Shown here piece by piece: positions 22,007 to 48,081 of a DNA stretch of 64,000 bases. The stretch is from the IMG/VR virus record IMGVR_UViG_3300023174_000039, positions 62,001-126,000 of that record; one strand, 5' to 3'. The notes under the pieces are model-generated. The model was given only the letters and a program-made list of their open reading frames with translations. It made no database searches and was not told where the DNA came from. Each line of letters starts with the position of its first letter. The stretch's first letter is position 1. The translations under genes and the position numbers were made by a program.

Positions 22007-23197
22007 ATGAAATCAACTGAAAATATCAGCACCTGCAGTTTTTGCAACAAACACAAAGATGCAGTAACCAAACTTATTGTAGGTGAAGAAGTTGCAATTT
22101 GCAACGAATGCGTGGACTTGTGCCAAACATTATTGGTAGATCAACCTGAGGCAAAATCCGAAGAAGCTAGTCTTGACCCTAGAGAGATTAAAAATCATCT
22201 TGACCAATATGTAATTGGGCAGGACAATGCCAAGGTCATGCTGAGTGTGGCCATTGCCAACCACTACAAACGCATTAGAAACAAAGATGTCAACACTGAA
22301 ATTGAAAAAGCCAACATTCTCATGCTTGGCCCCACAGGTTCGGGCAAAACATTGTTGGCTCGCACAGTGGCACGTTACCTAGATGTACCATTTGTGATTG
22401 CCGATGCTACTAGTCTAACCGAAGCAGGTTATGTGGGCGATGATGTGGAAAGTTTGATCAGTCGCTTGTATGCTGCCGCTGGGGGAGATGTTGAAAAAAC
22501 ACAACGCGGTATTGTGTTTGTAGACGAAATTGATAAAATCAGCCGCAAAAGCGAAAGCACCAGTATCACACGAGATGTATCCGGTGAAGGCGTACAGCAA
22601 GCCTTGTTAAAACTAGTAGAAGGCACCAAGTGTCGCATCGTGCCACAAGGTGGCCGCAAACATCCAGGCGGCGACAACATAGAAATTGACACACGCAACA
22701 TTTTGTTCATTGCCGGTGGCGCATTTGTTGGGCTAGACAACATTGTTAAAAGTCGTGTTCAAGGCACAGGCATTGGGTTTGGTGCAGAAGTAAACAGCAA
22801 AACAGCCGGAGATCTACACATTGACAAAACCACTCCTGACGATCTTGTGAGATTTGGACTTATTCCTGAGTTTGTGGGAAGGTTTCCTGCTTGGGTCGCA
22901 CTACGAGAACTAGACAAAAAAGATCTTGTGAGAATCCTTAAAGATGTCAAACATAACTATGTGAGTCAATATCAATGGTTGTTCAAACAGGACAATGTTG
23001 AACTTGAATTTACATCTGACAGCTTGGAGTTGATTGCAGAACGCACACTCAAAAACAAAACAGGCGCACGTGGATTACACAGTGAACTAGAGCGTGTGCT
23101 AATGCCACACATGTACAACCTAACACGCTATCGTACCAGCGGCATTAGCCATGTGGACATTGATCAGAATTTGGTAAATATTCCCAAGGAGCTTTAA
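22007..23197 (+). CDS. clpX: ATP-dependent Clp protease ATP-binding subunit ClpX
   Basis: C4 zinc finger, [23 protein letters not shown] loop, TGARGL. Confidence 0.97.
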
Positions 23198-23204
23198 TGC
23201 ATTT

Positions 23205-23429
23205 ATGGAAAAATTACACGGCAGATCAGTACTAGTCACGGACGGAAATGTTGATAGGGCATTGCGTAAATTCAAAAAGAAAATACAAGAAACAGGTTTG
23301 TTAAACGAACTTAGAGATCGAGAATTCTACACCAAGCCCACAACTCAACGCAAACTCAACGCCAGTGCTGCCAAAAATCGCTGGAAGAAAAAACTTCGAG
23401 ACCAACAGTTACCTAAAAAACAGTTCTAA
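23205..23429 (+). CDS. rpsU: 30S ribosomal protein bS21
   Basis: VDRALRKFKKK...ELRDREFYTKPT..RK. Confidence 0.92.
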   Translation: MEKLHGRSVLVTDGNVDRALRKFKKKIQETGLLNELRDREFYTKPTTQRKLNASAAKNRWKKKLRDQQLPKKQF

Positions 23430-23698
23430 TGTACATAGAGTTTTGTATCCCCAGTGGCGGAGGCGGCATGCCAGCACAATATGTCAACTACTGGTTGAAA
23501 CAAAATTTAGAATCTTGGGCCAAACGCTACAACGTTGAATACCAAACCAAGCATATCAAATACACTGTACGAGTAACGTTTGATGATGACAAATTGTATG
23601 ATTTTTTTGCCATGACCTGGCACCCAAAAAGCCAACACATGCAATCTGCTCTTGAACAATATCGCCTAATTGAACCAATGAAACTTGACAGAAGTTGA
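23429..23698 (+). CDS. hypothetical protein (same paralog family)
   Basis: VTFDDDKLYDFFAMTW. Confidence 0.65.
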   Translation: MYIEFCIPSGGGGMPAQYVNYWLKQNLESWAKRYNVEYQTKHIKYTVRVTFDDDKLYDFFAMTWHPKSQHMQSALEQYRLIEPMKLDRS

Positions 23699-23715
23699 GA
23701 TTTCCTGTATAAATA
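23685..23715 (+). promoter_or_regulatory. dual promoter: sigma70 TTGACA-17-TATAAA overlapping T4-type late TATAAATA
   Basis: TTGACA 23685, TATAAATA 23708. Confidence 0.75.
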
Positions 23716-23719
23716 TGTT

Positions 23720-23776
23720 TGTAGATGCCGATGGTCGGGTCTACATTTAACTAGTCATCTTGCTTAATAAAGGAGA
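23720..23776 (+). promoter_or_regulatory. ROSE-like RNA thermometer leader of hsp20
   Basis: 5' hairpin, then UCUUGCUU pairing with SD AAGGAGA with a bulged G. Confidence 0.65.
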
Positions 23777-23782
23777 AAACAA

Positions 23783-24241
23783 ATGACAAAAACTCTCACC
23801 CTTCGTTCTTTCGATATTCCCGCAATTCACAAATTTGGTATCGGGTTCGATAACATGTTTGATGAACTCATGCGTGTGAGTGCCCAACAAGGCAGCACCA
23901 ACTACCCACCTTATGATATTGTACAAGTCAACGATGACGAATACATGATCAGTGTGGCTGTGGCTGGATTTGGGTACGATGATCTCTCAGTGACCAAGGA
24001 TAAAAAGATTTTAGTTATCGAAGGCACACACAGTCGTGAAACTGTGGAAAATGAAGATTCAACTGCAAAATACCTGCACAAAGGAATCAGTGAGCGTAGT
24101 TTCCGTAGAGAATTTCAATTGGCGGATCATGTGGAAATTACCGGAGCACACCTTGAACTTGGTATCCTAAGTGTTCACTTAAAACGTGAAATACCTGAAG
24201 AAGCCAAGCCAAAGACCATTGCTATCACATACACTTCCTAA
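23783..24241 (+). CDS. small heat shock protein Hsp20 (IbpA-like)
   Basis: IGFD..FD, NYPPYDI, AVAGF, YLHKGISERSF.R.F.LAD. Confidence 0.96.
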   Translation: MTKTLTLRSFDIPAIHKFGIGFDNMFDELMRVSAQQGSTNYPPYDIVQVNDDEYMISVAVAGFGYDDLSVTKDKKILVIEGTHSRETVENEDSTAKYLHKGISERSFRREFQLADHVEITGAHLELGILSVHLKREIPEEAKPKTIAITYTS

Positions 24242-28125: not shown

Positions 28126-29364
28126 ATGAAAAAAATTGGATTTATTGGTATTGGTAAACTTGGCCTTGATTGCGCTGAAGTTATGGCAGAGAAGCACATG
28201 GTGCGGGGTTATGATATTTACCCACGTACCAGTGACACTGTAAAAGTTTGTGGCATTGACGAGCTGGTAAAAATGAGCGAATGGATCTTTATTGCTGTGC
28301 CAACCCCGCATGCAGAAGGATACGATGGATCCGTGCCATCAAGCCACATGACTCCCCGAGACTTTGGACATGATGCTGTGATTGATGCCATCAATAAAAT
28401 CAATCAACATGCTCAGACCAGCAAGAAGGTTGTGCTTATCTCTACTGTGCTACCAGGCACCACACGTGCCAAGTTTGTTACATTGCTGGACAAGAAACAT
28501 CAGTTCCTGTATAACCCTTATCTAATTGCCATGGGCAGTGTGAAGTGGGATATGGCCAATCCAGAGATGGTCATCATTGGCACCGAAGATGGTGAACTCA
28601 CAGGCATTGCTGGCGAACTGATTGAATTGTACAAGACCATCATGAACAACGATCCTCGTTATGAGATTGGCACATGGGACGAATGTGAAGCCATCAAGAT
28701 CTTCTATAACACATACATTTCTGCCAAGGTTGGCATTGTGAACATGATCCAGGACTTTGCCATGAAGATTGGCAACATCAATGTTGATGTTGTTACCAAT
28801 GCCCTGGCACGAAGCACCATGCGATTGCAAGGTCCCAAATACATGACAGCAGGCATGGGAGATGCAGGTGCATGCCATCCACGAGATAATATTGCCCTGC
28901 GTTGGTTGGCAGAACACTACGAAGTGGGCTATGACCTGTTTGACACAATCATGCATGCTCGTGAAATACAGGCCAAGAATCTGGGCTTGTTCTTGGTTGA
29001 ACAAGCCCGAGCCACAGGATTACCAATTGTGATTCATGGCAAAGCCTACAAGCCCGACGTTGAATACTGTATTGGTTCATACTCTACCTTGGTTGGACAC
29101 TATGTAAAAGAAGCAGGCATGCCTGTGGTATATGTTGATCCGCTGGCAGACAACCAGGATGAAGTGGTTGCGGAAGTCACAGGACCTGCTGTGTTTTTAT
29201 GGGCACACAACCGCAAGATCACCTACGAGTACACAGGCGAACAACAAGACACACAGGCCTATTGTGATATCAAACCAGGTTCGGTTATTGTTGATCCTTG
29301 GCGTAAACTGGCATCTACCGCAGATTACCGAGTAGTACACTATGGCAACACACGTGGTCAGTAA
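28126..29364 (+). CDS. UDP-glucose/GDP-mannose dehydrogenase family protein
   Basis: GIGKLG, AVPTP, STVLPG, IKIFYN, GACHPRD, AYKP, DP. Confidence 0.92.
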   Translation: MKKIGFIGIGKLGLDCAEVMAEKHMVRGYDIYPRTSDTVKVCGIDELVKMSEWIFIAVPTPHAEGYDGSVPSSHMTPRDFGHDAVIDAINKINQHAQTSKKVVLISTVLPGTTRAKFVTLLDKKHQFLYNPYLIAMGSVKWDMANPEMVIIGTEDGELTGIAGELIELYKTIMNNDPRYEIGTWDECEAIKIFYNTYISAKVGIVNMIQDFAMKIGNINVDVVTNALARSTMRLQGPKYMTAGMGDAGACHPRDNIALRWLAEHYEVGYDLFDTIMHAREIQAKNLGLFLVEQARATGLPIVIHGKAYKPDVEYCIGSYSTLVGHYVKEAGMPVVYVDPLADNQDEVVAEVTGPAVFLWAHNRKITYEYTGEQQDTQAYCDIKPGSVIVDPWRKLASTADYRVVHYGNTRGQ

Positions 29365-32118: not shown

Positions 32119-32760
32119 ATGAAAACCATTGCCCTATTTGTACACCAACCCAAATGCTCTGTACAAAGTGCTAACGGAATTATCGAAGCATTGAGCCCGC
32201 ACTATCGATTCAAAATCTTTACCCGCCACGAAGTTGAGCGGGATTTTTTTGACGATGTGGATGCTGTTTGTTTCCCCGGTGGCATAGGCGATGCCAGCAG
32301 TTTTGATTACTTGACGCGAGAGAATATCACCAAGATTCAAGCCTTTGTGAGCACAGGCGGAGCATATATTGGCATCTGCATGGGTGCGTATTGGGCCAGC
32401 AGCAACTACTTTGACATACTCAAGCATGTTGATGCCAAACAGTACATGCGCAGACCCGGTACAGACACACGCCGACCACATGCTAAAAACATTGACATAA
32501 CCTGGAACAATGATCCAATGAAGATGTTTTGGTATGATGGGTGTGCTCTGGTTGGCGATGAGTCAAAGTTTACAACTGTGGCCCGCTATACAGGAAACAA
32601 CGACCCAATGGCCATCATACAAAACCGCATAGGACTAATAGGGTGTCATCCTGAAAGCACACCGCATTGGTATGAATCTTACAGTTGGATGCGTAGTCGA
32701 TATCATGATGGTTACCATCACGCATTATTATTAAATTTTGTCAACAGTTTATTAGTGTAA
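32119..32760 (+). CDS. BPL_N / class I glutamine amidotransferase-like protein
   Basis: FPGG, YIGICMGAY, GCHPE catalytic triad. Confidence 0.85.
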   Translation: MKTIALFVHQPKCSVQSANGIIEALSPHYRFKIFTRHEVERDFFDDVDAVCFPGGIGDASSFDYLTRENITKIQAFVSTGGAYIGICMGAYWASSNYFDILKHVDAKQYMRRPGTDTRRPHAKNIDITWNNDPMKMFWYDGCALVGDESKFTTVARYTGNNDPMAIIQNRIGLIGCHPESTPHWYESYSWMRSRYHDGYHHALLLNFVNSLLV

Positions 32761-32789
32761 CAAAATTGTAATAGTCTTCGTCTTAAATA
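32755..32789 (+). promoter_or_regulatory. Pho-box-like direct repeat plus late TAAATA promoter
   Basis: TGTAAC(32756)/TGTAAT(32767) with 11-bp period; TAAATA at 32784. Confidence 0.7.
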
Positions 32790-32793
32790 CTTG

Positions 32794-33606
32794 ATGAAGA
32801 CATATCGCTCAATCTTTGTTAGTGATGTCCACCTTGGAACCAAAGATTGTCAAGCCGATCGTCTCAACAACTTTCTCAAACACAACTCCTGTGATACCTT
32901 ATACCTAGTAGGTGATATCATTGACGCCTGGCGCATACAACAAAACCGCTGGCGTTGGAAGCAGAGCCACACCAACGTTGTTCGTCGGGTGTTAGGTCAT
33001 GCCAAGCGTGGTACTAGAGTTGTTTATGTAGCAGGCAACCATGACGAGTTCCTGAGACCAATGATACCATATGGTTTCAGTTTTGGACTTGTAGAAATAC
33101 ACAATCAAATTGAACATATAGGTGCCGACGGCAAGCACTATCTAGTCACTCACGGCGACTTGTTTGATGGTATAACAAGACTGGCACCATGGATAGCATT
33201 CTTAGGAGACAAAGCGTATGACATCGTTCTTACTATCAACTCTAAGTACAATTGGTTACGTCATCGCATGGGTTTTGGGTACTTTAGCATTAGCCAGTTT
33301 CTTAAGCACCGAGTTAAAAAAGCTGTAGACTTTATGTTCAAGTTTGAAGAAAATCTAGCAAACTATTGCAAGAAGCGTGGGTACGATGGAGTAATCTGTG
33401 GACACATACATCATGCAGAAATAAAAGAAATCAACGGTGTTATGTATATGAACGACGGAGACTGGGTTGAATCGTGTACTGCCTTAGTAGAACACTGGGA
33501 CGGACATTGGGAAATAATTACCTGGACCAAGGAGACAGACAATGTGGGTATTGATACTACTGGCAGTTCACTTAAACGACTCAAAAGACGTGCCGGGCCG
33601 AATTGA
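32794..33606 (+). CDS. PlcP-like phospholipase C (LpxH-like metallophosphoesterase)
   Basis: SDVHLGT..CQA, VGDIID.W, GNHDEFLR, HGDLFD, GDKAY, CGHIH, NDGDWVESCTAL. Confidence 0.85.
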   Translation: MKTYRSIFVSDVHLGTKDCQADRLNNFLKHNSCDTLYLVGDIIDAWRIQQNRWRWKQSHTNVVRRVLGHAKRGTRVVYVAGNHDEFLRPMIPYGFSFGLVEIHNQIEHIGADGKHYLVTHGDLFDGITRLAPWIAFLGDKAYDIVLTINSKYNWLRHRMGFGYFSISQFLKHRVKKAVDFMFKFEENLANYCKKRGYDGVICGHIHHAEIKEINGVMYMNDGDWVESCTALVEHWDGHWEIITWTKETDNVGIDTTGSSLKRLKRRAGPN

Positions 33607-33708
33607 ATTGCTATTTCAGGATCGCGCCACATGTGAACAAAGTCTGCAGAGCATGACATATTGGTTGAAGTTTAACCAATTCAAAATTGAAGGAAGGTGT
33701 GTGAAAAA

Positions 33709-34419
33709 ATGAAACTCAGCGATAAAATTACTATTGTAGTACCTTGCAAGAATGAAGAAAACTATATTCATCATTTGTTGGATGCCTTGCGTGGCCAAGA
33801 CATTGGCAACACCAGAATCATCATAGCTGACTGTTCCACTGACGCAACTAGACAAGTGATACAAGATAATAGTGCAGGACTGAATGTTGAAATCATTGAT
33901 GGTGGTCCCGTGAGTATAGCCAAGAACCGCGGAGCAAGATTAGCAACCACTCCATACATCTTGTTTATTGATGCCGATGTACGCTTCTTTAAACCCACAG
34001 TTATTCAAGATGCTGTCAACGCCATTGAACAAAAGAACTTGGATTTAATAGGATTGAAAATTAAATGTTATGACCAAGATCCAAGAGCAAAGATAGGGTT
34101 TATTATTTTTAATACTATAAATCAAGCATTGAAATATTTCTCACCTTTTGCAGTTGGTGCATTCATGCTCACACGCAAAGATCGGTTTGAAGAATTTGGC
34201 GGTTTCCCTGAACAGCTTAGTACCTCTGAGGACTACTTCCTATCAAAGAAATACAATCCCAGAAAGTTTAAAATCATCCGACACCACCTTGGGCAAGACT
34301 CGCGCAGATTCAAGAAGATGGGATATTTAGGTATGGCCAAGTATTTGGTGAAAAATTTTGTCAATCGTAATAATCAAGCATATTGGCACAAATCAGATCA
34401 TAATCGTTACTGGATGTAA
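33709..34419 (+). CDS. glycosyltransferase family 2
   Basis: VVPCKNEE, D.STD, AKNRGA, FIDAD, GGF, ED, SRR. Confidence 0.9.
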   Translation: MKLSDKITIVVPCKNEENYIHHLLDALRGQDIGNTRIIIADCSTDATRQVIQDNSAGLNVEIIDGGPVSIAKNRGARLATTPYILFIDADVRFFKPTVIQDAVNAIEQKNLDLIGLKIKCYDQDPRAKIGFIIFNTINQALKYFSPFAVGAFMLTRKDRFEEFGGFPEQLSTSEDYFLSKKYNPRKFKIIRHHLGQDSRRFKKMGYLGMAKYLVKNFVNRNNQAYWHKSDHNRYWM

Positions 34420-34448
34420 CATTACTGTAACTATCAATCACGTAAATA
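34414..34448 (+). promoter_or_regulatory. Pho-box-like direct repeat plus late TAAATA promoter
   Basis: TGTAAC(34415)/TGTAAC(34426); TAAATA at 34443. Confidence 0.7.
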
Positions 34449-34495: not shown

Positions 34496-35443
34496 ATGAG
34501 ATTAGAAGACCTAGCCACAAGATTATCGGCTGTTGAAGCCAAGTTAGCTACCCTAACTGGAACCACAGTTAACACAGACAGTGCCACAAGCATTGAAGAA
34601 CTAGACACAAGACTATCCATTGTTGAAATTCAAATTGAGCAGTTAATTGCTGTAAAAACACAACAACACGTTGACGCTATTGTTGCCGCAGCCGCACAAG
34701 CAGTTGAAAGCATCCAGGACGCTGTTGCAGAAGTAGTTGCACTTTCTCCAAGTGCAGAAGTACCAGCAGCCGCTGACATTGTGGCTGACGTTGTTCAAAC
34801 TCAAGCAGAAGCACCGGCTGTAGAGCACTCAGAAGTTGCTGACATTGTTTCAGCCGCTGTTCAAGCAGTTGTTGCTGCCGAGCCAGAAGTTGTCATTGAT
34901 ACAGTGGCAATTACAGAAGCTATTATAGCCGCTGTTGCTGATGCACCTTTGCCAACCAAAGCAGGAAATTCCATAGCAAATCAAAATATCTGCGCACCTG
35001 GCAATGAGCGAGTATGGTTATACCAAGGCAACATGAGCTCTACTCAGTGGGAAGATACACTGTTGATCAAGAGTGGTTACACTTGGTTTGCTCCAGAAGC
35101 AGACGTGACTTCTGGTGTTGTTATTGATGGTGATAGCCATGATGGAATCTATCACATTACTGTGGCCGATGCTGGTGGTAATGTTGTCATTCCAACTTCT
35201 GGCAAAGTATATACTTTTGTTCCACCAGCATCTGCAACAGAACCAGCACCAGAAGTGGTGCAACAGGTTGTTGACGCAGTTGTTGAAATCATTGCTGCCG
35301 CAACAGGTGTTGACACAGTTGCTCCTGAAATTGTACAACAAGTTGCTGATGCAATTGCAACTCCAGCAGATCCAGCACTAGACGCTATTGAAGCACGTTT
35401 AAATGTTGCTGAAGCCAAAGTTGATACCTTATTGGGCAAGTGA
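34496..35443 (+). CDS. acidic Ala/Val-rich protein with terminal coiled-coil repeats
   Basis: RLSAVEAK / RLSIVE / RLNVAEAK; SD AAGGAG. Confidence 0.75.
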   Translation: MRLEDLATRLSAVEAKLATLTGTTVNTDSATSIEELDTRLSIVEIQIEQLIAVKTQQHVDAIVAAAAQAVESIQDAVAEVVALSPSAEVPAAADIVADVVQTQAEAPAVEHSEVADIVSAAVQAVVAAEPEVVIDTVAITEAIIAAVADAPLPTKAGNSIANQNICAPGNERVWLYQGNMSSTQWEDTLLIKSGYTWFAPEADVTSGVVIDGDSHDGIYHITVADAGGNVVIPTSGKVYTFVPPASATEPAPEVVQQVVDAVVEIIAAATGVDTVAPEIVQQVADAIATPADPALDAIEARLNVAEAKVDTLLGK

Positions 35444-35582: not shown

Positions 35583-36890
35583 GTGAGTAAGATGATAAAA
35601 AGAATTGCCCTAGGTCTGGCCAGCCTTGTGCTGGTAGCAGTTGCCACTGCACAAACTACCACTACGTCGGGTACAACTGGTGGAACAACCACAGGTACTA
35701 GTACGCTGATCAATCAAAATTCATCATTGACCGGCGGATACTCTTCAACCAGTCTAGTAGACACCAACAGCACCAGCAACAGCACCAGCTTGGTTAACTC
35801 AAACAGCAATACCACCAGCAACAGCAACAGTACCAGCAACAGCACAATCAACAGTACCAGCACAAACAACAACAATAACAACAGCACCAGTACCAGTGTA
35901 AACACCAACAACAATATTCAAAGCGGTACGGTGACCAACAACAACAACAATGTCAACAGCGGCACAATGACCTACAACAACAACAATGTGAACTCTGGTA
36001 CAATGACCTACAACAACAACAATGTCAATACTAGCACCAGTGTAAACACCAACAACAACAACAATGTCAACACTGGCACGATGACCTACAACAACAACAA
36101 TGTGAGCACAAGTAACAGCACCAGTGTAAACACCAACAACAATATCAACACTGGTGACATGACCTATAGAAACATCAACACAAGTACCAGCACAAGTACT
36201 GCCACCAACAACAACAACAATGTGAACACAGGCACGATGACCTACAACAACAACAATGTGAGTACCAGTGCTGCCACAGTTAACAATAACAATGTCAGCT
36301 CCAGCACTGCCACCAACAACAATGTCAACACTGGTGACATGACCAATAGAAACATCAGCACTTCATCTAGTACTGCCACAAACACCAATATCAATCAAAA
36401 TGCAAACGTAAACACCAACATTCAAGCAGGTGAGTTGACCAACAAGAACATCAACACCACTGAGATTACACAGCGAGTTATTCAACCACCTCCAACAGCA
36501 GTAGCACCAGCTATGTTGAGTGGCGGCAACGCTGACCTATGCTCAACTGGTAGTAGTGGCAGTATACAAACACAGGTATTTGGCATAAGTTCAGGTGGTA
36601 CCATGCGTGATATGAATTGCGAACGTCTAAAGCTATCCAAGACTCTGTACGACATGGGCATGAAGGTTGCCGCAGTTGCCACAATGTGTCAAGACCGTCG
36701 CGTGTTTGATGCCATGTTGGCTGCTGGAACACCTTGTCCATACGAAGGCAAAATTGGTGAGCAGGCCCGAGCACAATGGGATGCAAATCCAGACAAGATC
36801 CCAAAGATGCCAGAGGAAAAAATAGATGACACTTATAAGAAAATTGGTATTGGCGCTTTGCTTGGCGTTATTGTCAACAAGTTATTCTAA
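35583..36890 (+). CDS. secreted/membrane protein with long Asn/Thr/Ser repeat and conserved Cys-rich C-terminal domain
   Basis: Signal peptide; repeats; DMNCERLKLSK.LYDMGMKVAAV..MCQD..AGTPCP; C-terminal TM. Confidence 0.8.
   Translation: MSKMIKRIALGLASLVLVAVATAQTTTTSGTTGGTTTGTSTLINQNSSLTGGYSSTSLVDTNSTSNSTSLVNSNSNTTSNSNSTSNSTINSTSTNNNNNNSTSTSVNTNNNIQSGTVTNNNNNVNSGTMTYNNNNVNSGTMTYNNNNVNTSTSVNTNNNNNVNTGTMTYNNNNVSTSNSTSVNTNNNINTGDMTYRNINTSTSTSTATNNNNNVNTGTMTYNNNNVSTSAATVNNNNVSSSTATNNNVNTGDMTNRNISTSSSTATNTNINQNANVNTNIQAGELTNKNINTTEITQRVIQPPPTAVAPAMLSGGNADLCSTGSSGSIQTQVFGISSGGTMRDMNCERLKLSKTLYDMGMKVAAVATMCQDRRVFDAMLAAGTPCPYEGKIGEQARAQWDANPDKIPKMPEEKIDDTYKKIGIGALLGVIVNKLF
35760..36460 (+). repeat. 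coding AAC/ACC-rich repeat (GTMTYNNNNV units)
   Basis: ATGACCTACAACAACAACAATGT occurs four times, plus GDMT variants. Confidence 0.9.
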
Positions 36891-38694
36891 CAGCCAACAA
36901 GTTGATACAACAGGTAACCTGACTAACTTTACTAATCAGGCCAACAGTACAACCTCTACTTGGCAAAATGCCGGCACAATTGGTCAGCAGTTGACCTGCT
37001 GGGAAGCTGGCGGCCCGGGCTATTGTGGACCATTGCCCAGAGTTGCGGCCTGGGGTGCAGGGTCAAATGTCATCAACTTCTCCTATGGGTTAACTGACTT
37101 GAATCAAGTGGTCAATATTAAAAACGCATTGCCCAATTCAGGCACAGGACTACAAGTAAACGGATTTAATTTTACGTTCCAGGCCAAAAACGGCAACGGC
37201 TGGGACAATGGAATGACCGACACCTTGAGTGCTTATGTAAACATCTACAACAACACAAACTCAAAAGTATTGGAGAACTACAACTGGAATTTATCCTACA
37301 ACACACAGGGGTGGAGAAACTTTGATCTCAGCAAGACTTTCACAAGCCCATATGGTGCTCCTGATTTAGGCAACGCCCAGTATGGATTTGTGGGCAAGGA
37401 CAATAACTTTTGGGTTGGCCCTTATGGCCCTGAAATTATAAATGTTAATTTTGGTTTGAAGTATAGTGTTGATCCATGTGCCACCAATCCCTTGTACTCG
37501 CCTAGCTGTAAAGGATATGCAGACGCTCTTGCTAAATTGGCCCCAACACCGGTGGCTATAGCTACTGATGCACTACCACCCCCGCCCCCAGAATCTGGCC
37601 CACCACCACCAGGATCTCCACCACCTCCTGGCAGTCCTCCACCGTCAGATGCACCCATGGCAGGTCCGCCTCCACCCCCAGGAGCACCTGGCGCAGGCAA
37701 TAATCCCAATGCACCACCTCCAGCAAATCAACCACCACCCGGTGGAGGACAACCGGCTCGTCCTGGTGAAACAAAAACAGCCAATGACAGCAAAGCGGGT
37801 CCCAGTCTTGGCAATGTACTAAGCATGATCAGCAGTAATCAAGCCAGAATTGGCAACGAAACAAAAGCAGTAGTTCAAGCCGCAGAGTCGGCTGCTGCCA
37901 AAGATGCACAACAGGCACAGTCGCAAGCCGAATCTGTGGCTGCCACAGCAGTGATGCAAAGTCAGTCAGATACTGCAACCACTAATAACAATAGCACCAC
38001 AGCTAAATCTACCAGCAGTCAGACTCAGAATTCATCAATTGCATTGGCGTCGGCCACACAAACCACAGTGGGCAAAGTTGAAACATTGAAATCTGGCACC
38101 ACTGCTCAAGAAGCAACCGCTGCATCTCAAGCGCCTGCAGGACAAATTGAAACACTAAAAGGTGCAACTCCTCCGGTGGTCACAACTGATGTGGCCACTG
38201 TGGCTTCTGCGCCAGCAACTAACACAGGCCCTGCACCACAGTCTGCGGTCAACACAGCAACTGTCCAACCCACTACTGGTGCAGTTGAATCTTCACGTTA
38301 TGAGTTGTTTACATTGCGTGGCCCAACCAACACTGTTGAATTTGAAATACCGCAACTGGAAGGCATCAAGATAGGCACACGATCAGCACTGATGGATGCA
38401 ATAGAACAGCAGCCGATGGTTCAACAAACCGCAACACAAACACAGTCAACTTCTGCGGTGAATCGCAATGTGCAGGCCAATGAACTAGCCGGAGGTGTTG
38501 ACATTGCCAACATAGCACGTCAGCCTGCAGGCTATCAAGCATACTCAACTGCCATGCCTGATGTGGCATTTTATGCACCACGTGAAATATATCGTAATCA
38601 AGTCAACGTGGACAACGCAAGATTATTGCGTGGCTTGGGTAGTGATAGACTGCACCAAGAAATGGTTAACCAGCAGTATAAACTGGGAGAATAA
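36826..38694 (+). CDS. secreted protein with N-terminal beta domain and Pro/Ala/Thr-rich linker
   Basis: Signal peptide; DPC..NPLYSPSC.GY; poly-Pro; HQEMVNQQY. Confidence 0.75.
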   Translation: MTLIRKLVLALCLALLSTSYSNSQQVDTTGNLTNFTNQANSTTSTWQNAGTIGQQLTCWEAGGPGYCGPLPRVAAWGAGSNVINFSYGLTDLNQVVNIKNALPNSGTGLQVNGFNFTFQAKNGNGWDNGMTDTLSAYVNIYNNTNSKVLENYNWNLSYNTQGWRNFDLSKTFTSPYGAPDLGNAQYGFVGKDNNFWVGPYGPEIINVNFGLKYSVDPCATNPLYSPSCKGYADALAKLAPTPVAIATDALPPPPPESGPPPPGSPPPPGSPPPSDAPMAGPPPPPGAPGAGNNPNAPPPANQPPPGGGQPARPGETKTANDSKAGPSLGNVLSMISSNQARIGNETKAVVQAAESAAAKDAQQAQSQAESVAATAVMQSQSDTATTNNNSTTAKSTSSQTQNSSIALASATQTTVGKVETLKSGTTAQEATAASQAPAGQIETLKGATPPVVTTDVATVASAPATNTGPAPQSAVNTATVQPTTGAVESSRYELFTLRGPTNTVEFEIPQLEGIKIGTRSALMDAIEQQPMVQQTATQTQSTSAVNRNVQANELAGGVDIANIARQPAGYQAYSTAMPDVAFYAPREIYRNQVNVDNARLLRGLGSDRLHQEMVNQQYKLGE

Positions 38695-39756: not shown

Positions 39757-40443
39757 TTATGCTGATTTTTTAATTACCGCTTGAACAAGGCTGTCTATGC
39801 TGTTCACAATGGGCACACCTTGTTCACTAGCAATACCGATGCTTAGGGGCAATTCAGTACAGCCCAGCACAATAGCTTGAGCTCCATGTGTGATCAGGCT
39901 GTGAATCACCTGCATCAGCAATACCTGAGATTCCCCAATCTTGCCAGCCTTGATAAAGTCAATTGCAGGTTGTACAAAAAAGTCCATTTCAGCACGGTCA
40001 GGAACAATACATTTCCATCCCTGTTGCTCTAGTTTGTGTTGATAGATACCGTTGTCTATTGTGCCTTGTGTGCCCATGATGCCAATGGTGGTGTTGGCAA
40101 GTCCTAGTTCACGCAGTTGATCTGCTATGCTGTCCACTATGTGAGTGATGGGCACACCCATTTTTGCCATGTCATCATACCAATAGTGTGCAGAGTTGCA
40201 AGGGATCACAACATGATCACAGCCCACAGTTTTCAGTGCCTGTATGCCCTGCAACAACCACAGCATGGGTTGATTGTCACCGGCTTGCATGGCTCGGCTA
40301 CGGTCAGGTATTCTTGGCTCGTTCCACAACACAAAAGGTATGTGTTCTTGATCGGTTGTGGCAGGCGTTTGTTTTATGAGTCTAGTCACAAACTCTGCTG
40401 ATGCCGCAGGACCCATGCCACCTAGTATGCCCAATCGTTTCAT
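39757..40443 (-). CDS. aspartate/glutamate racemase
   Basis: MKRLGILGGMGP, PDR, IPCNSAH, LGCTELP (two catalytic Cys). Confidence 0.93.
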   Translation of the reverse strand: MKRLGILGGMGPAASAEFVTRLIKQTPATTDQEHIPFVLWNEPRIPDRSRAMQAGDNQPMLWLLQGIQALKTVGCDHVVIPCNSAHYWYDDMAKMGVPITHIVDSIADQLRELGLANTTIGIMGTQGTIDNGIYQHKLEQQGWKCIVPDRAEMDFFVQPAIDFIKAGKIGESQVLLMQVIHSLITHGAQAIVLGCTELPLSIGIASEQGVPIVNSIDSLVQAVIKKSA

Positions 40444-41219
40444 ACTTTGCTGTGTTGCAACAACAACACAGTGTTGTTGTGTTGATTGGGATGAAAATCT
40501 CTGCGCATGAAGCTCAACCAAGGTCCGACCAACCCAGTCACAAATCCATTTTTCCAGTTGAACAACACAATCACAGCATCTTTTGCTGTGCGCCATTTCC
40601 ACAGTTGACGATCTGCACGTAGCAACACCAGGGTATTTCTGGCAATATCCCACACAAAGTTTGCAGTGGTCAACAGCATGCTGAGTCGCAGTTTACCGCC
40701 GCCAATGGCGTTGATAGTGTCCATGGCAACTGCTTTGTGTTCTATTTCTTCCACAGCATGCCAAGTCCACAACTGACGAAAGTGAGGATGCATGCTGTCC
40801 AACAGTTCAGGATGTGTCAACAAGTGTTCGGCAAAGATGGCAGTGATGTGCTCTAGACTCACTGTGCTGGCCAGTTGACCTTTTTTGCTGATTTTGGTTT
40901 TGATGTATTCTAGTTTGGCCAGTGCCAGTGCTTCCAAACGTTCAGCAGGCAAGCCTTGCTTGGTCAGCCAAAGATTGTATTGTTGGTGAGCATAACGATG
41001 CCAGTTTTCTTGTTTGACAAATGTGGCAATTGCTTGTTGTTGGTCAGCATCGGTGATTCTGTGTTGATAGTTTTTCACGCTGTCAATAAAGAAACGTTCA
41101 CCATGTGGGAATGTGATGCTCAAGGCATTTAAAAAATGTGTTTTGAACGCACTGTTATCAAAATAGTATTTTGGTAATTCCTGTGTCCAGTCTTGCTTTA
41201 GTGGTTGTTCTTTGAACAT
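40440..41219 (-). CDS. predicted metal-dependent hydrolase (PF10118-like, di-metal)
   Basis: NALS.TFP.GE.FFI, QE..H...H, LEH.TA, WHA.EE.EHK.VA, FHP. Confidence 0.85.
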   Translation of the reverse strand: MFKEQPLKQDWTQELPKYYFDNSAFKTHFLNALSITFPHGERFFIDSVKNYQHRITDADQQQAIATFVKQENWHRYAHQQYNLWLTKQGLPAERLEALALAKLEYIKTKISKKGQLASTVSLEHITAIFAEHLLTHPELLDSMHPHFRQLWTWHAVEEIEHKAVAMDTINAIGGGKLRLSMLLTTANFVWDIARNTLVLLRADRQLWKWRTAKDAVIVLFNWKNGFVTGLVGPWLSFMRRDFHPNQHNNTVLLLQHSKV

Positions 41220-41224
41220 ATTAG

Positions 41225-42133
41225 TTAGAAGGTAATTGATCCTGACCCCACAGTGGTCCACTTGTACACTCTATAGCCACCGGCAACTGTGACAGTTGGG
41301 CTACCAGTAGTGGCAGTTGCGGCTGCATATGAGTCTGGGTAACGAATGATCACGATACCTGATCCGCCACCTGCGCCAGACCCGTCGTTTCCCGGAGTCC
41401 CGCCGCCTGAGCCACCGCCGCCTCCACCAGTGTTTGGAGTTCCGGCAGTTGCAGTGGTTGCTCCTGTTGCTCCTGCACCACCGCCACCTGCACCACCAGA
41501 TCCAGCTGTACCACTGCCACCGCCACCAGCGTATCCACCGCCACCACCGCCACCTGCATAGGTTACAGATGTTCCAGATATTGAACTTGCTGTGCCTCCT
41601 CCACCATTTCCACCATTAGCTCCAGCATTGCCACCAACCGCACTGGCGCCGCCACCGCCACCAGCATGATAAGGAGGAGAAGTTGAACCTGATCCCCCGG
41701 AATTTCCTTGGCTTCCTGTCCCAGAACCACCCGATCCCGGCGCCGACACGCCGTACCCACCACCGCCACCAGATCCACCTGTTCCGCCGCCACTGGTACT
41801 ACTGGTATATGAATACGCACCGGCGCCACCACCAATAGATGTTATAGTGCTAAAAATAGAATCACCACCAGATGCACCTGCTTGTGTGCTTGAGTTTGGT
41901 GCGCCACCTGCGCCAACAGTGACCGTGATGGGTGTACCACTGGCTACTGCAAATCCTGTTGCGGTTCTAAATCCACCTGCACCCCCGCCCCCGCCATGTC
42001 GTGTACCACCTGCCCCGCCACCGCCAACCACAAGATATTCAACTGTGGGCGTAACTGACGGGCCACCACCTGTGGTATCGCCAATGGCCCATGCACCTGT
42101 AATTGCCCATCCGGGCCCGATTGTGAATCCCAT
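41225..42133 (-). CDS. glycine-rich domain virion/fibre protein
   Basis: VEYLVVGGGG, NTGGGGGG, GGSGIVIIRY; shares the N-terminal IGPGW motif. Confidence 0.75.
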   Translation of the reverse strand: MGFTIGPGWAITGAWAIGDTTGGGPSVTPTVEYLVVGGGGAGGTRHGGGGGAGGFRTATGFAVASGTPITVTVGAGGAPNSSTQAGASGGDSIFSTITSIGGGAGAYSYTSSTSGGGTGGSGGGGGYGVSAPGSGGSGTGSQGNSGGSGSTSPPYHAGGGGGASAVGGNAGANGGNGGGGTASSISGTSVTYAGGGGGGGYAGGGGSGTAGSGGAGGGGAGATGATTATAGTPNTGGGGGGSGGGTPGNDGSGAGGGSGIVIIRYPDSYAAATATTGSPTVTVAGGYRVYKWTTVGSGSITF

Positions 42134-42158
42134 GCTTGTGTCCTTATTAGACTCTTAT

Positions 42159-42761
42159 TTATTTTTTAAACAACAATGATGAAGCGATGACCAAGGCAGT
42201 CTGTGCAGCCTCTACGTCATCAGGCTGTTGTTTCCAACCCACGCTGATTTGTCCTATAAACACCCCGGGCTCGGCAGGCACACTGATACGGCACATGTAA
42301 TTCACACCGTTTTCTCTGTAGGCAAATCCAATTAGACTTTGTGGTTTGAGATAGGGACTGCACGGTATTTTACCAGACATGAGTCCAATCACATCATTGT
42401 TGTTGTCGTAGTTTTTGCTGAACAAGCCCACATCCAGGCCGTCGTACTGCTTGATTCTGCCACCATTGCGTGTGGACACAAACACAATTTTTCTTGTGTT
42501 TACCAGGGTATTGACCTCCATGATAGACACCAGTTCTACATCGGTGTTTTTCAACAAGAAATTGTAGGCTTCTTCATATCGGCCATTCATCTTGGGCAGG
42601 GCCTGTTGGGCACGATATGTGGCCATCATGGCATCTTTTTCGCTGTAAACAAACCAGCCCACAAAGCCCAGCACACACAGTAATATTACTGTGAATAATC
42701 TAAAAGGACTTTGCCCGATCCAGTTTAGTATTTCAAGCAGGGCTTCTTTGATCTTGTCCAT
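42159..42761 (-). CDS. single-TM protein with GAF-like periplasmic domain (T4 holin T-like?)
   Basis: N-terminal TM; C-terminal YMCRISVP....FIGQISVGW. Confidence 0.45.
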   Translation of the reverse strand: MDKIKEALLEILNWIGQSPFRLFTVILLCVLGFVGWFVYSEKDAMMATYRAQQALPKMNGRYEEAYNFLLKNTDVELVSIMEVNTLVNTRKIVFVSTRNGGRIKQYDGLDVGLFSKNYDNNNDVIGLMSGKIPCSPYLKPQSLIGFAYRENGVNYMCRISVPAEPGVFIGQISVGWKQQPDDVEAAQTALVIASSLLFKK

Positions 42762-44022
42762 GTGCCTGTTCTTTGTCACAAACAAATGCTGTCACTGCTA
42801 CGTTACCATGCACATGACTTGCTGTGCGAATCATGTCCATCAGAGGATCAACTGCAATCAACAGTACCAACACAGCTTCGCTGGGCAGTTTCAACAAGTC
42901 ACAAACAACTGCTACAGTGGCCACTGTGAGAATACCTGTTGTACCTGCTGATGCAAGCCCTGCCAAGATACTACCAAATAGCACAACTAGTAATCCTGTT
43001 AAGCCTAGTGGTGCATCATAAATGTTGGCAATGAATACTGTGGCAATGGCATAGTAAACGATACTACCAATGCGATTAACAGTGAAGCTGAGTGGCACAG
43101 TTAGTTCAACGCCGCCCTTGTCAAAGTGTAGTTTGTGCAGGGCTTCTTGTGCGTATGGGATACAGGCCAAACTTGAGCGTGAACTCACAGCAACAATCAG
43201 TGTTTCTTTGGTTTCTCGGATCACGGTAGCAAGGCTTAGACCTGAACGTGCCCAGATCACAGCAGTACCTGCCGCAACAACCAACACCCCCCCAACAAAC
43301 TGCTGGAACACAAAGTCAAACATGGTCATGAAGATGCCCACACCAACCTTGCCAACCTGCGATGAAATCATGGCCAACAGCGCAATTGGCAAGAAATAGT
43401 TTAGGAACTTGAAGATGCTGATACTGGCCTGTTGAATACTCTTTAGCACTTCCACCAACATCTTTTGACCTTCTGTTTTCAGGTGCCCCAGTGCCACACC
43501 AAAGATCAAACAAAAGATCACAATCTTTAAGCTCTCACCATTGTTTAGTGTGTTGAAGATGTTTTCAGGAATGAACTTTTCTGCCATCTTGCCTGCATTG
43601 ACAGGTGGTGCAACAGGCATGGGCTCGTGTAAAGTGATATTCAAATCAGTACCACTGTCTTTGTTGTTGACCAGCACACCCAGTTGTGTTTTCTTCTCTG
43701 GTGTCATTTCTGTACCTGTGACCAGCACAGTGCCCACACCAATCACAGCGGCCAGGAACATACTGCCCACAAAGCCAATGATGATTTTGCGTATCAATTC
43801 TTGACTGCCTTCTTTCTGCAGTAGGCCAATGATACCCACCAGGATAGTGGCCAACAAGAATGGTAACACAACAACTTTGAGCAGGCTGATGTAGATGCTG
43901 CCAATGCTGTCAAGACCTGTGCTGAACTCTGGAGCATACACACCAGCTAGAATGCCCACAATGATTGAACCAAGTATGGTCCAGGGGCTGATCAAAAATG
44001 TTTTTAAATGTGCAGTTGTCAT
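42733..44022 (-). CDS. dicarboxylate/amino acid:cation symporter (DAACS, GltP family)
   Basis: Multi-TM; IPENIF, SSRSS hairpin, D...DM.RT in TM8. Confidence 0.92.
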   Translation of the reverse strand: MTTAHLKTFLISPWTILGSIIVGILAGVYAPEFSTGLDSIGSIYISLLKVVVLPFLLATILVGIIGLLQKEGSQELIRKIIIGFVGSMFLAAVIGVGTVLVTGTEMTPEKKTQLGVLVNNKDSGTDLNITLHEPMPVAPPVNAGKMAEKFIPENIFNTLNNGESLKIVIFCLIFGVALGHLKTEGQKMLVEVLKSIQQASISIFKFLNYFLPIALLAMISSQVGKVGVGIFMTMFDFVFQQFVGGVLVVAAGTAVIWARSGLSLATVIRETKETLIVAVSSRSSLACIPYAQEALHKLHFDKGGVELTVPLSFTVNRIGSIVYYAIATVFIANIYDAPLGLTGLLVVLFGSILAGLASAGTTGILTVATVAVVCDLLKLPSEAVLVLLIAVDPLMDMIRTASHVHGNVAVTAFVCDKEQAHGQDQRSPA

Positions 44023-44031
44023 GGGGTGTCC

Positions 44032-44850
44032 TTATTTCTTTTCAGCTTTGTAGCGATCCATCAACTTCTTGGTGTCGATGTTGTTGTATTCATTTTTAAT
44101 CACGTAGTTGACCACGCTCAACAGTTGAATAGCCCGGGGATTCACTGCCACAGCAATGTTGTCTACACTGTCAGAGATGGTGATTGACTTGGTAGTAATT
44201 GCCGCATCTGGCTTTTCAAATGCAATTTTCTTGATTTCAAATTCATCACGGTAAGCGGCAGCGATGTCGCCACGTGTGACTTTGTCAATGATCACATCCC
44301 ACTTGTCTTCAGGCAGGAATTGTGCATTGGGAAAGTTAATTCTAGCAAATGTGTCATAACTGGAGTTGCGGATAAAACTTATCTTGCCGTTGAATTCTCT
44401 AATCACTTGATACACTTCTCTGCCCTGAGTATTCTGGCTCAACCATAGTCGATTCACAACTAAACTTTGGCGCAGTTTGATATAGGGATCACTGAATCTA
44501 ACTACTTGTAACCGTGGACCAGTTACGGATAGTTTACTAACAGCAATATCTGCTCTGCCATCTCTGACCTGTTCTACAACTTCTGCGAAGCTTTCTGCGT
44601 CTCGTCTAAACTGTACAGGAACTCCAAGTAACACCCCAATGCGTCGAGCGATCTCAACGTCAAGGCCGTGTATGGTATCCTCGTCTCCGGAAAAGAATGG
44701 AGGATTGTCTTTTTTGGTCATTGCCACCACAAGCACATTGGCTTTTTTGATTGCGGCAATATCTGCGGGTAGTGGTACAGTTGATGTTGGTAACTGTGCA
44801 GAAGCAACAGTGGCCAACACAAGTAATACGGTGGCGAATAGTTTTTTCAT
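44032..44850 (-). CDS. periplasmic amino-acid substrate-binding protein (SBP family 3)
   Basis: Signal peptide; NPPF, GLDVEIA, ADIAVS.LS.T..R...V.FSDPY. Confidence 0.92.
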   Translation of the reverse strand: MKKLFATVLLVLATVASAQLPTSTVPLPADIAAIKKANVLVVAMTKKDNPPFFSGDEDTIHGLDVEIARRIGVLLGVPVQFRRDAESFAEVVEQVRDGRADIAVSKLSVTGPRLQVVRFSDPYIKLRQSLVVNRLWLSQNTQGREVYQVIREFNGKISFIRNSSYDTFARINFPNAQFLPEDKWDVIIDKVTRGDIAAAYRDEFEIKKIAFEKPDAAITTKSITISDSVDNIAVAVNPRAIQLLSVVNYVIKNEYNNIDTKKLMDRYKAEKK

Positions 44851-48036: not shown

Positions 48037-48081
48037 GTAATTATCTAAGCAGTTTATTGTTTAGATAATCATTTGTACATT

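Follow-up and report, generated by a model that had tools for sequence, protein, structure and literature searches.

A candidate Pho-controlled plcP-glycosyltransferase operon for phosphorus-sparing lipid remodelling in a freshwater jumbo phage

Results

A freshwater jumbo phage was found to encode a protein of the PlcP phospholipase C family, and its gene is preceded by a Pho-box-like promoter and followed by a glycosyltransferase gene. The arrangement is likely a Pho-controlled operon for phosphorus-sparing lipid remodelling (probability about 0.65), though it remains a candidate module without biochemical demonstration. The window, which is the whole 64-kb stretch of DNA analysed here, comes from the 331.7-kb (331,654-bp) IMG/VR contig IMGVR_UViG_3300023174_000039, recovered from freshwater metagenomes. 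Near-identical DNA was present in freshwater and lake metagenomes from 13 studies. A DNA-level search of a phage collection returned no match. A bacterial origin of the contig was considered; its IMG/VR UViG status, matches to phage PHROGs and the lack of any tRNA or rRNA in the 64-kb window spoke against it. The PHROG matches include ribonucleotide reductase, an ATP-dependent DNA ligase and two ClpP-like genes matching head-maturation protease families; those to tail-fibre and virion proteins were weak, and no capsid, portal or terminase gene was found inside the window. Neither pstS nor any phosphatase was identified within the 64 kb. The PlcP-type gene is widespread: its protein variants are known in thousands, and a relative of the window protein is encoded on 435 IMG/VR contigs.

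The plcP-type gene lies at 32794..33606 on the + strand and encodes 270 aa, predicted to be a phospholipase C. Its open reading frame (32791-33606, +) is intact and probably starts at the ATG at 32794. The initial annotation, made from sequence alone, had claimed a PlcP-type motif set, and every motif it quoted is present in the translation (SDVHLGTKDCQA, GNHDEFLR, HGDLFD, WIAFLGDKAY, CGHIHH and NDGDWVES). The product matches Pfam Metallophos (E 4e-12), and in an alignment of 23 family sequences DVHLG, GDIID, GNHDE, HGDLFD, CGHIH and NDGDWVES were invariant; the metal-binding and catalytic set is complete. The C-terminal tail is 23 aa shorter than in relatives of 293-294 aa. This tail is variable and wholly absent from 250-aa relatives; the catalytic domain of the window protein is complete despite it.

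The window protein shares 54% identity (267 bits) with P. aeruginosa PlcP, the PA3219 orthologue, which adjoins agt1 and cyaB, and 44% identity (239 bits) with S. meliloti PlcP (SMc00171), which adjoins sinR/sinI. The two characterised enzymes are 46.6% identical to each other (249 bits); the phage protein is as similar to them as they are between themselves. In a maximum-likelihood tree, all three fell in one clade of 82 rows (support 99/96), and LpxH was split off with support of 100/99. Branching within the PlcP clade was unresolved, and the tree did not resolve the bacterial lineage that donated the phage gene. No copy more than 57% identical to the phage PlcP was found in any bacterial genome of a 185,579-species set. 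The phylogeny against PlcP and LpxH that the initial annotation had proposed as a check was thus run, and the protein grouped with PlcP, apart from LpxH.

Scores against LpxH pointed in the same direction. Six LpxH proteins were at most 27% identical to the window protein (30-41 bits), and both LpxH equivalog models stayed below their cut-offs (NF003743, 45.6 bits vs 134; TIGR01854, 33.4 vs 190.35). The proteobacterial LpxH motifs GNRDFL, HGDxLC and HGHTHR stand against GNHDE, HGDxFD, CGHIH and NDGDWVES in the window protein. GNRD and HGHTH are present in the five proteobacterial LpxH proteins compared, and the LpxH signature (SDLHLS, GNRDFL, HGHTHR) was not found in the window protein. PlcP and LpxH are distinct families, because both paralogues sit on one Ralstonia replicon. 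By sequence, motifs and phylogeny the window protein belongs to the PlcP phospholipase C family and not to LpxH; its enzyme activity, Mn2+-dependent phospholipase C, is inferred.

The second gene, at 33709..34419 on the + strand, encodes a GT2 glycosyltransferase of GT-A fold, predicted from its Pfam family, AF2 fold, genomic slot and DXD motif to be a glycolipid synthase acting on diacylglycerol (DAG). It comprises 236 aa from the ATG at 33709, with an alternative GTG start at 33697. The claim that a GT2 follows the metallophosphoesterase held, with a Pfam Glycos_transf_2 (PF00535) match of E 1.4e-20 (74.4 bits, gathering cut-off 23.3). The protein also passed the cut-off of Glyco_transf_21 (E 4.4e-8), a family that includes the processive DAG glycosyltransferases adjoining plcP in rhizobia. 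Its DXD motif, D88-A-D90, is invariant. The AF2 model, built with a 40-sequence alignment, gave a soluble GT-A domain with pLDDT 84.8 (only 41.6 from a single sequence) that Foldseek matched to GT2 enzymes at probability 1.00; it has none of the transmembrane helices found at the C-terminus of GtrB-type enzymes. Foldseek matches in PDB and Swiss-Prot were generic GT-A proteins (TarS, WrtF, PgaC, CrtQ, AglE, PcManGT), no DAG glycosyltransferase being among the top ones, and the acceptor could therefore not be assigned. A PDB sequence search was likewise generic (TarS and others), and the best PHROG match was 'GtrB-like O-antigen conversion'. The homologue search returned only relatives of 83-100% identity. 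The nearest bacterial relatives (28-31% identity) have a VTT/DedA-LssY membrane protein, not plcP, as their partner, and one bacterial relative is paired with a PAP2 phosphatase. No GT2 homologue was found beside the 80 closest bacterial plcP genes.

The linkage of plcP to a glycosyltransferase is obligatory in the viral loci, with GT2 and GT4 replacing each other at one position. A glycosyltransferase was directly 3' of plcP in all 78 viral loci with enough downstream sequence, those not extending far enough having been left out of the count. It was a GT2 in 62 of these and an Agt-type GT4 in the other 16, while the remaining flanks varied. Both types fill the same slot, about 20-100 nt after plcP, in variable neighbourhoods, and in 17 loci the gap between plcP and GT2 is 1 nt, which implies co-translation. 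GT4 (Agt) is the enzyme by which bacteria convert PlcP-made DAG into glycolipids, and the GT4 of the phages aligns with P. aeruginosa Agt1 at 37% identity (E 2e-79). Among the 80 closest bacterial plcP loci, an Agt homologue lies no more than 2 kb away in 59, in nearly every case directly 3' of plcP. The window GT2 does not have the features that define Agt (GT-B fold, Glyco_transf_4 plus Glycos_transf_1); only sister phages carry GT4. Linkage of plcP to a DAG-using gene (agt, pgt, btaAB) is met in those 16 sister loci, whereas the partner in the window is a GT2 of unknown acceptor.

Upstream of plcP, the claim of a Pho-box-like site also held, supported through sister phages. The operator-like element at 32755..32772 (+ strand) is an 18-nt direct repeat of two 7-nt half-sites with a 4-nt spacer (GTGTAAC AAAA TTGTAAT), identified by an exact motif match and by sister loci. 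A -10-like hexamer, TAAATA, was read from the sequence at 32784..32789 (+); 11 nt separate it from the box upstream and 4 nt from the ATG downstream. The BPL_N / class-I glutamine amidotransferase-like gene at 32119..32760 (+; Pfam BPL_N, 1.6e-12) lies directly upstream of plcP and ends inside the box, whose first bases belong to its last codons; such a gene neighbours plcP in several sister loci, not in most. Exact TGTMAY-N5-TGTMAY occurred twice in the 64 kb against 0.49 expected (at least two copies in 4 of 100 shuffles), both times directly upstream of + strand genes. With one mismatch allowed, the relaxed motif was at chance level. When up to 3 mismatches to the strict E. coli consensus, CTGTCATNNNNCTGTCAT, were allowed, matches were fewer than expected by chance and none lay near plcP, so the box in the window is convincing only through comparison with sister phages. 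A generic promoter/terminator scan was uninformative.

This comparison showed a conserved promoter type. The 708 kb of viral loci contained 73 + strand copies of the box and a single - strand copy; it lay 38-61 nt before the plcP ATG in 44 of 80 loci. The spacing from the box to a following TAAAT was exactly 11 nt for 41 of the 49 distinct viral instances, and the box of some loci has three repeats. Against the CTGTCAT/C consensus, both half-sites in the window (GTGTAAC, TTGTAAT) have A for C at position 5. At the same position sister phages have TTGTAAC/TTGTAAT variants or the canonical TTGTCAC-ATAT-TTGTCAT; canonical TGTCAY was seen in 11 of the 49 distinct instances, and most, including both window copies, read TGTAA. 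The box in the window has the layout of a Pho promoter, 11-nt-period repeats that lie about 10 nt upstream of the -10 and replace the -35 element, and in bacteria plcP is preceded by CTGTCAC-type boxes. As a conserved promoter type that also precedes phage pstS, the Pho-box-like site is real; PhoB binding and induction by phosphate limitation are inferred. No RNA run covering the region was on record, and in one metatranscriptome only contigs 85-90% identical over plcP were found, possibly from DNA carry-over.

A second Pho-box-like operator (ATGTAAC ATTA CTGTAAC; 34414..34431, +), the other exact match in the window, overlaps the GT2 stop codon and is followed 11 nt later by TAAATA at 34443-34448. 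Behind it lies a 315-aa gene of unknown function (34496..35443, +), whose product has no Pfam or PHROG family and matched only viral hypothetical proteins in the Atlas. Homologues of its N-terminus lie behind boxes in other loci (L023, L029, L052, L065 and more). From the position of the box, we infer that this gene likely belongs to the same regulon as plcP-GT2.

In sister phages the module is associated with pstS. The gene abuts it in 15 sister loci (PstS equivalog 386-405 bits, cut-off 339), and in seven of these 15 an exact box lies downstream of GT2 and before pstS. For seven loci with pstS upstream of plcP, the upstream regions were read directly, and a box precedes pstS. In an independent phage, Pelagibacter phage Mosig, the plcP homologue (47% identity) is divergent from pstS. 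Further away in the window, the gene at 28126..29364 (+) encodes a nucleotide-sugar dehydrogenase of the UDP-glucose/GDP-mannose family (PHROG 'UDP-glucose dehydrogenase', 1.7e-84) with Pfam UDPG_MGDP_dh domains; its NCBIfam NDP-sugar dehydrogenase subfamily score of 124 bits is below the 189.8 cut-off. It is possible that it supplies UDP-glucuronate for a glucuronosyl lipid, its link to the module being inferred.

Discussion

The initial annotation had proposed a viral lipid-remodelling module. This is supported as a candidate, every computational check named with the proposal having come out in its favour, while DAG as the GT2 acceptor, binding of the box by host PhoB and the feeding of phosphorus into phage DNA synthesis remain inference. 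In the mechanism we propose, a PhoB-type activator, most likely the host's, would bind the repeat at 32755-32772 in a phosphate-starved infected cell. Lying 11 nt upstream of TAAATA, the repeat would stand in for a -35 element, and its occupation by the activator would turn on plcP and GT2. PlcP, an Mn-type metallophosphoesterase with an LpxH-like fold, would then cut the phospho-head groups off host glycerophospholipids and leave DAG, which GT2 would cap with a sugar from a UDP-sugar to give a phosphorus-free glycolipid, the bilayer staying intact. The freed phospho-alcohols would join the phosphorus pool of the cell and support replication of the 331-kb genome. It is a caveat to this mechanism that the product of PlcP is phospho-alcohols, not free phosphate. 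The second box copy would drive the gene behind it, in sister phages pstS, and phosphate uptake and internal scavenging would therefore be co-regulated.

The closest known system is the bacterial PlcP-Agt operon, with examples in S. meliloti (SMc00171), Phaeobacter (MED193_17359), SAR11 HTCC7211 (PB7211_983/960), P. aeruginosa (PA3219-PA3218) and B. cenocepacia (BCAL2364-2366) (PMC4796936, PMC8528852, PMC13691135, PMC9239053). The phage module resembles it in its orthologue-level PlcP (44-54%), the glycosyltransferase immediately downstream and the Pho-box-type repeat upstream, and sister phages carry the Agt-type GT4 itself. It differs in being encoded by a jumbo phage, in having a 236-aa GT2 in place of GT4 and in lacking dagK, and the modules of many viral relatives are flanked by phage pstS. 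Cyanophage pstS and phoA reportedly lie behind Pho boxes and are controlled by the host PhoBR (Zeng and Chisholm 2012). They are likewise phage genes behind a host-type Pho box, and pstS of the sister phages belongs to the same apparent regulon as the module. However, the target here would be host membrane phospholipid and not external phosphate, and the hosts are likely freshwater heterotrophs, unlike the cyanobacterial hosts of those phages.

Two cultured phages encode homologues of the same PlcP-type family, Mosig_00120 of Mosig EXVC030M (47% identity) and QPX48289 of Synechococcus phage S-SRM01 (36%). Unlike the window gene, they have no glycosyltransferase next to them; their annotation is LpxH, and they go undiscussed in the publications on those phages. 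We found no description of a viral or phage PlcP in the literature searched, phage copies being annotated LpxH.

The rival explanation that survives best accepts PlcP as genuine and holds that GT2 uses a membrane or envelope acceptor other than DAG, for which a surface polymer, polyprenyl phosphate or a lipid of carotenoid or hopanoid type would be examples. On this view the two genes would not form one pathway: one would release phosphorus and the other modify the envelope, for instance in superinfection exclusion. In its favour are the top fold and sequence matches (TarS/TarP, WrtF, AglE, PcManGT, CrtQ), the GtrB-like best PHROG, the VTT/DedA-LssY and PAP2 partners of the bacterial relatives and the absence of GT2 from all 80 bacterial plcP loci. 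Against it, GT2 sits exactly where other loci have the Agt-type GT4 while the remaining neighbours vary, is separated from plcP by that 1-nt gap in 17 loci, passes the Glyco_transf_21 cut-off and, as a 236-aa soluble GT-A model, is without the GtrB-type helices. Phage surface-modification GT2s (TarP, GtrB-like O-antigen conversion) are likewise phage-borne and of GT-A fold. However, the likeness is at fold level only (~20% identity), and the window GT2 lacks a membrane anchor and has plcP as its constant neighbour, while the TarP/GtrB-like enzymes have flippase or acceptor-specific partners. We consider this rival unlikely.

It is still less probable that the box serves a regulator other than host PhoB, phage-encoded or not, as its operator or promoter element, with timing set by the infection programme and not by phosphate. 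The preponderance of TGTAA over TGTCA, also in both window copies, the lack of a host sequence for comparison and the unknown-function gene at 34496-35443 behind a box could be taken for it. However, half-site length, 11-nt period, distance to the -10 and the absent -35 are features of Pho-regulon promoters, canonical TGTCAY does occur among the distinct instances (11/49), and pstS, the archetypal Pho gene, has the box in front of it in the sister loci examined. With no more than two copies in the 64 kb, the box does not qualify as a general phage promoter. We regard this rival as very unlikely and keep to Pho control as the preferred reading.

The last rival, in which the enzyme is an LpxH-like UDP-2,3-diacylglucosamine hydrolase and lipid A / LPS synthesis is enhanced or modified by the pair, rests on the LpxH names of homologues in JGI and GenBank and on LpxH being the sole PDB sequence match (E 3.6e-4), and it is all but excluded by equivalog scores far under the cut-offs, low identity, missing signature motifs and the split in the tree, the same misleading annotation being found on characterised PlcPs. 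The window protein does share with LpxH (PDB 5b49, 8qk2) the calcineurin-like metallophosphoesterase superfamily, a similar size and common metal-binding residues; it differs from it in identity (at most 27%), in motifs, GNHDE vs GNRD among them, and in falling in a separate clade. Auxiliary-gene calls of "LpxH / LPS biosynthesis" in viromes are probably misassigned.

A bolder reading of the same module, that of a phosphorus-sparing operon under Pho control, would be that freshwater jumbo phages of one large clade have a small Pho regulon of their own (pstS, plcP-GT and the 315-aa gene), hijacking host PhoB to turn membrane phospholipids into phosphorus for phage DNA, with the 236-aa GT2 an unrecognised type of DAG glycosyltransferase that replaces Agt. 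We would not venture to say whether this is more probable than its opposite. By a rough estimate, about 6.6e5 phosphorus atoms go into a genome of 331,654 bp; with roughly 2e7 phospholipids, a cell the size of E. coli would have enough for some 30 such genomes, and small lake bacteria contain far fewer phospholipids.

The phosphate genes known from phages (pstS, phoA, phoH) target phosphorus outside the cell, or their roles are unclear. If our reading is true, the virus would instead mine the host membrane, which is among the largest internal phosphorus stores. The module also offers a putative new family of DAG glycosyltransferases and an uncharacterised gene apparently under Pho control. Since plcP is widespread in viruses, the lake glycolipid signal and the counts of plcP as a phosphorus-stress marker could be partly viral.

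Identity of the plcP-type gene

The plcP-type gene (32794-33606, +) and the GT2 gene (33709-34419, +) are likely, with a probability of roughly 0.65, to form a Pho-controlled lipid-remodelling operon of the phage. The initial annotation had set this module at 32794-34419, and the span held, running exactly from the plcP start codon to the GT2 stop codon. The first product is a calcineurin-like metallophosphoesterase of 270 aa from the ATG (Pfam E 4e-12). In the databases it and its relatives are named "UDP-2,3-diacylglucosamine hydrolase LpxH". This name does not hold, and the protein belongs to the PlcP family, its enzyme activity being inferred. Both LpxH equivalog models of NCBIfam gave it scores far below threshold (45.6 bits, cut-off 134; 33.4 bits, cut-off 190), and its top PDB match, an LpxH, merely reached E 3.6e-4. 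For comparison, two experimentally characterised PlcP sequences were taken from chromosomal records mislabelled within a plasmid collection. One is the orthologue of P. aeruginosa PA3219, with agt1 downstream and cyaB convergent, PA3219 PlcP having been characterised experimentally (PMC8528852). The second, S. meliloti SMc00171, adjoins sinR/sinI; PMC9239053 and PMC8528852 cite its characterisation. Identity of the window protein was 54% to the former (267 bits) and 44% to the latter (239 bits), and the two share 46.6% (249 bits). Against six LpxH proteins (E. coli, Neisseria, Acinetobacter, Ralstonia, Legionella and Bacteroides), identity was at most 27% over long alignments, with 30-41 bits.

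A phylogeny against characterised PlcP and LpxH, named as a check by the initial annotation, upheld the PlcP grouping. In the maximum-likelihood tree (89 sequences, bootstrap not fully converged), the six LpxH proteins separated with support 100/99, while one clade (99/96) united the two characterised PlcPs with the window protein and its relatives from phages. This clade was star-like internally, thus no donor lineage can be named. The peptide motifs quoted earlier as PlcP-type were all present. GNHDE, HGDLFD, CGHIH and NDGDWVES occur in the window protein and are of the same type in all PlcP-type sequences, whereas proteobacterial LpxH has GNRDFL, HGDxLC and HGHTHR instead. The catalytic residues were invariant in a 23-sequence alignment; the C-terminal tail is short, and among relatives it is variable and dispensable. 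Furthermore, on a single Ralstonia replicon a true lpxH occurs alongside a PlcP-type gene whose product is 51% identical to that of the window, indicating that the two are distinct paralogous families. LpxH identity was thus rejected on equivalog scores, identity, tree and motifs alike.

Linkage of plcP to a glycosyltransferase

Relatives of the plcP product were encoded on 435 IMG/VR contigs, the larger of which (230-525 kb) are jumbo-phage sized; a 240-kb record from NCBI and a 384-kb contig from JGI, both additional assemblies, share the gene arrangement. The 80 closest viral loci included 78 that reached past plcP, and every one of these had a glycosyltransferase directly 3' of it; these loci are related and do not represent independent events. 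The partner was a GT2 of the window type in 62 of the 78, abutting plcP with a 1-nt gap in 17 of these, and an unrelated GT4 (Glyco_transf_4 plus Glycos_transf_1 domains) in 16. The phage GT4 shares 37% identity (E 2e-79) with P. aeruginosa Agt1, which was shown to produce monoglucosyl-DAG from PlcP-derived diacylglycerol (DAG) (PMC8528852). An Agt homologue lay no more than 2 kb from plcP in 59 of the 80 closest bacterial loci (46-57% identity; Alpha-, Beta- and Gammaproteobacteria), almost always immediately downstream. Since the phage GT4 is Agt1-like and bacterial plcP mostly adjoins an Agt gene, the GT4 module is the canonical plcP-agt operon. In contrast to that operon, the window has a non-homologous GT2 in the GT4 slot. 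The chief reason to assign GT2 the function of GT4 is this substitution at one constant position; their equivalence is inferred from the shared slot, and the acceptor is its weakest link.

The GT2 gene encodes 236 aa (Pfam E 1.4e-20), exceeds the Pfam cut-offs of both Glycos_transf_2 and Glyco_transf_21, and has an invariant DXD motif. Its AlphaFold model (40-sequence alignment, pLDDT 84.8) was a compact GT-A domain that lacks a transmembrane segment and whose C-terminal helices are basic and aromatic. Foldseek returned only generic relatives (TarS/TarP, WrtF, PgaC, AglE), together with the carotenoid glycosyltransferase CrtQ, the phenolic-glycolipid enzyme Rv2957 and the polyprenyl-phosphate mannosyltransferase PcManGT; ESM-Atlas look-alikes were similar. 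No GT2 homologue lay beside plcP in the 80 closest bacterial loci. The closest bacterial relatives (28-31% identity; Rhodobacterales and Vibrionaceae) always had a VTT/DedA-LssY membrane protein next downstream, and one had a PAP2 lipid phosphatase upstream. Such evidence fits a membrane-lipid acceptor in general and does not identify DAG, which is inferred. The bacterial GT2-VTT/DedA-LssY pair, conserved in loci L180:3209-5988, L182:4001-6006 and L183:4001-6169, itself appears to be a lipid-glycosylation cassette not yet characterised.

Genes flanking the module varied among viral loci (BPL_N/amidotransferase-like, UvdE, fatty-acid desaturase, peroxiredoxin, pstS and others). In the window, a BPL_N/class-I glutamine-amidotransferase-like gene (32119-32760) lies directly 5' of plcP and recurs beside the module in several sister phages. 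A fatty-acid desaturase, another lipid-modifying auxiliary gene, was a few kb from the pair in about ten sister loci (including L001:12246-12953), and its link to lipid remodelling is possible though speculative.

The Pho-box-like element

A search with the E. coli Pho-box consensus failed at plcP. The Pho-box-like site proposed there by the initial annotation held as a conserved element once sister-phage upstream regions were aligned, PhoB binding being inferred without binding data. It is built from a pair of 7-nt direct repeats, [C/T/G]TGT[A/C]A[C/T], with a 4-nt spacer. The exact degenerate motif occurred twice in the 64-kb window (0.49 expected). The first copy (32755-32772, +; GTGTAAC-AAAA-TTGTAAT) is followed by 11 nt, TAAATA, 4 nt and the plcP ATG. 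The second (34414-34431, +) overlaps the GT2 stop codon, and 11 nt later comes TAAATA (34443-34448), preceding an ORF at 34496-35443 (+; 315 aa, Ala/Val/Glu-rich, no family assignment) that it is inferred to drive as a promoter, transcript-start data being absent. Homologues of the N-terminus of this ORF also lay behind boxes elsewhere, and its slot was occupied by pstS in seven sister phages.

Across 708 kb of viral loci, 73 boxes lay in the coding orientation and only one in the reverse. A box lay 38-61 nt 5' of the plcP ATG in 44 of 80 viral loci. TAAAT followed exactly 11 nt past the box in 41 of 49 distinct instances, and canonical Pho-box half-sites were present in 11 (e.g. TTGTCAC-ATAT-TTGTCAT and GTGTCAC-ATAT-CTGTCAC). 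At position 5, both half-sites carried the same base (A or C) in 48 of the 49, and different boxes of one phage were likewise consistent. In the E. coli Pho regulon, a tandem 11-nt-period repeat replaces the -35 about 10 nt before the -10 of PhoB-activated promoters. The viral box has this architecture, with an 11-nt-period tandem repeat in place of a -35 and a similar distance to the -10, whereas its activation by PhoB is inferred. Bacterial plcP has CTGTCAC-type boxes upstream, that of P. aeruginosa being published (PMC8528852). The other gene type behind the box in viral loci was pstS (PstS equivalog 386-405 bits, cut-off 339), immediately preceding plcP in eight loci and immediately following GT2 in seven. 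Bona fide phage pstS adjoined the module, each behind a box, in viral loci L014 (3897-4937), L034 (3840-4886), L047 (2507-3514) and 12 further ones; none was found within the 64-kb window. The cultured Pelagibacter phage Mosig, an unrelated myophage, has a 47% identical plcP homologue annotated as LpxH and divergent from pstS (Mosig locus, L004:4903-6738). Its plcP-pstS intergenic region carries 11-nt-period repeats of a different form (TTTAACA-N4-CTTAACA), possibly another Pho-box dialect.

Genomic context and distribution

The window belongs to the 331,654-bp viral contig IMGVR_UViG_3300023174_000039 (100% match). Its phage-like genes include ribonucleotide reductase, ATP-dependent DNA ligase, ClpX, HSP20 and UvdE; two ClpP-like genes match PHROGs head-maturation protease families, many others are PHROG families with unknown function, and no tRNAs were found in the window. 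A proteostasis/stress set (22007-24241, 48073-50943 and 16644-17168) comprises ClpX, HSP20, two ClpP-like proteases and peroxiredoxin, and sister contigs additionally carry Cpn10, HSP70, ClpS, SOD, NifU and ribosomal protein S21. A host-like block (39757-44886, -) encodes an Asp/Glu racemase, a PF10118 metal hydrolase, a glycine-rich protein, a sodium:dicarboxylate symporter and a family-3 solute-binding protein. A large low-complexity protein (35583-36890), Asn/Ser/Thr-rich with repeated NNNNVNTGTMTY units, lacks a Pfam family and matched only a PHROG of unknown function (phrog_20531, E 4.8e-12). Another (36826-38694), with a long Pro-rich stretch, had no Pfam family or PHROG match. A second metallophosphoesterase (59479-60330; phrog_1649, E 1.9e-48) is unrelated to the plcP product.

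Near-identical DNA was present in lake and freshwater metagenomes of 13 studies, and two DNA runs contained contigs identical to the window. In a lake metatranscriptome, contigs 85-90% identical were found over plcP only, which is weak evidence that relatives of plcP are transcribed, DNA carry-over not being excluded.

Proposed mechanism

Under phosphate limitation, a PhoB-type activator would switch on plcP and GT2, the downstream unknown gene and, in sister phages, pstS. PlcP would strip phospho-head groups from PE, PG or PC and leave DAG, which the glycosyltransferase is predicted to turn into a phosphorus-free glycolipid. DAG accumulation would thereby be averted and the membrane would work until lysis, and the phospho-alcohols may then be usable for nucleotide synthesis. 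The gene at 28126-29364, 3.4 kb upstream of the module, encodes a nucleotide-sugar dehydrogenase (UDP-glucose/GDP-mannose dehydrogenase family) that might supply UDP-glucuronate for a glucuronosyl lipid, which is speculation.

Neither the PlcP-Agt pathway nor the presence of Pho-box genes in phages is new. No description of a phage-encoded PlcP operon was found in the literature searched; papers on two cultured phages with a plcP homologue do not mention the gene, and a Lake Baikal virome study placed a gene of this kind, named lpxH, in LPS biosynthesis. What is new here, relative to that literature, is the viral location, the replacement of GT4 by GT2, and the inferred membership of the module in a small phage Pho regulon.
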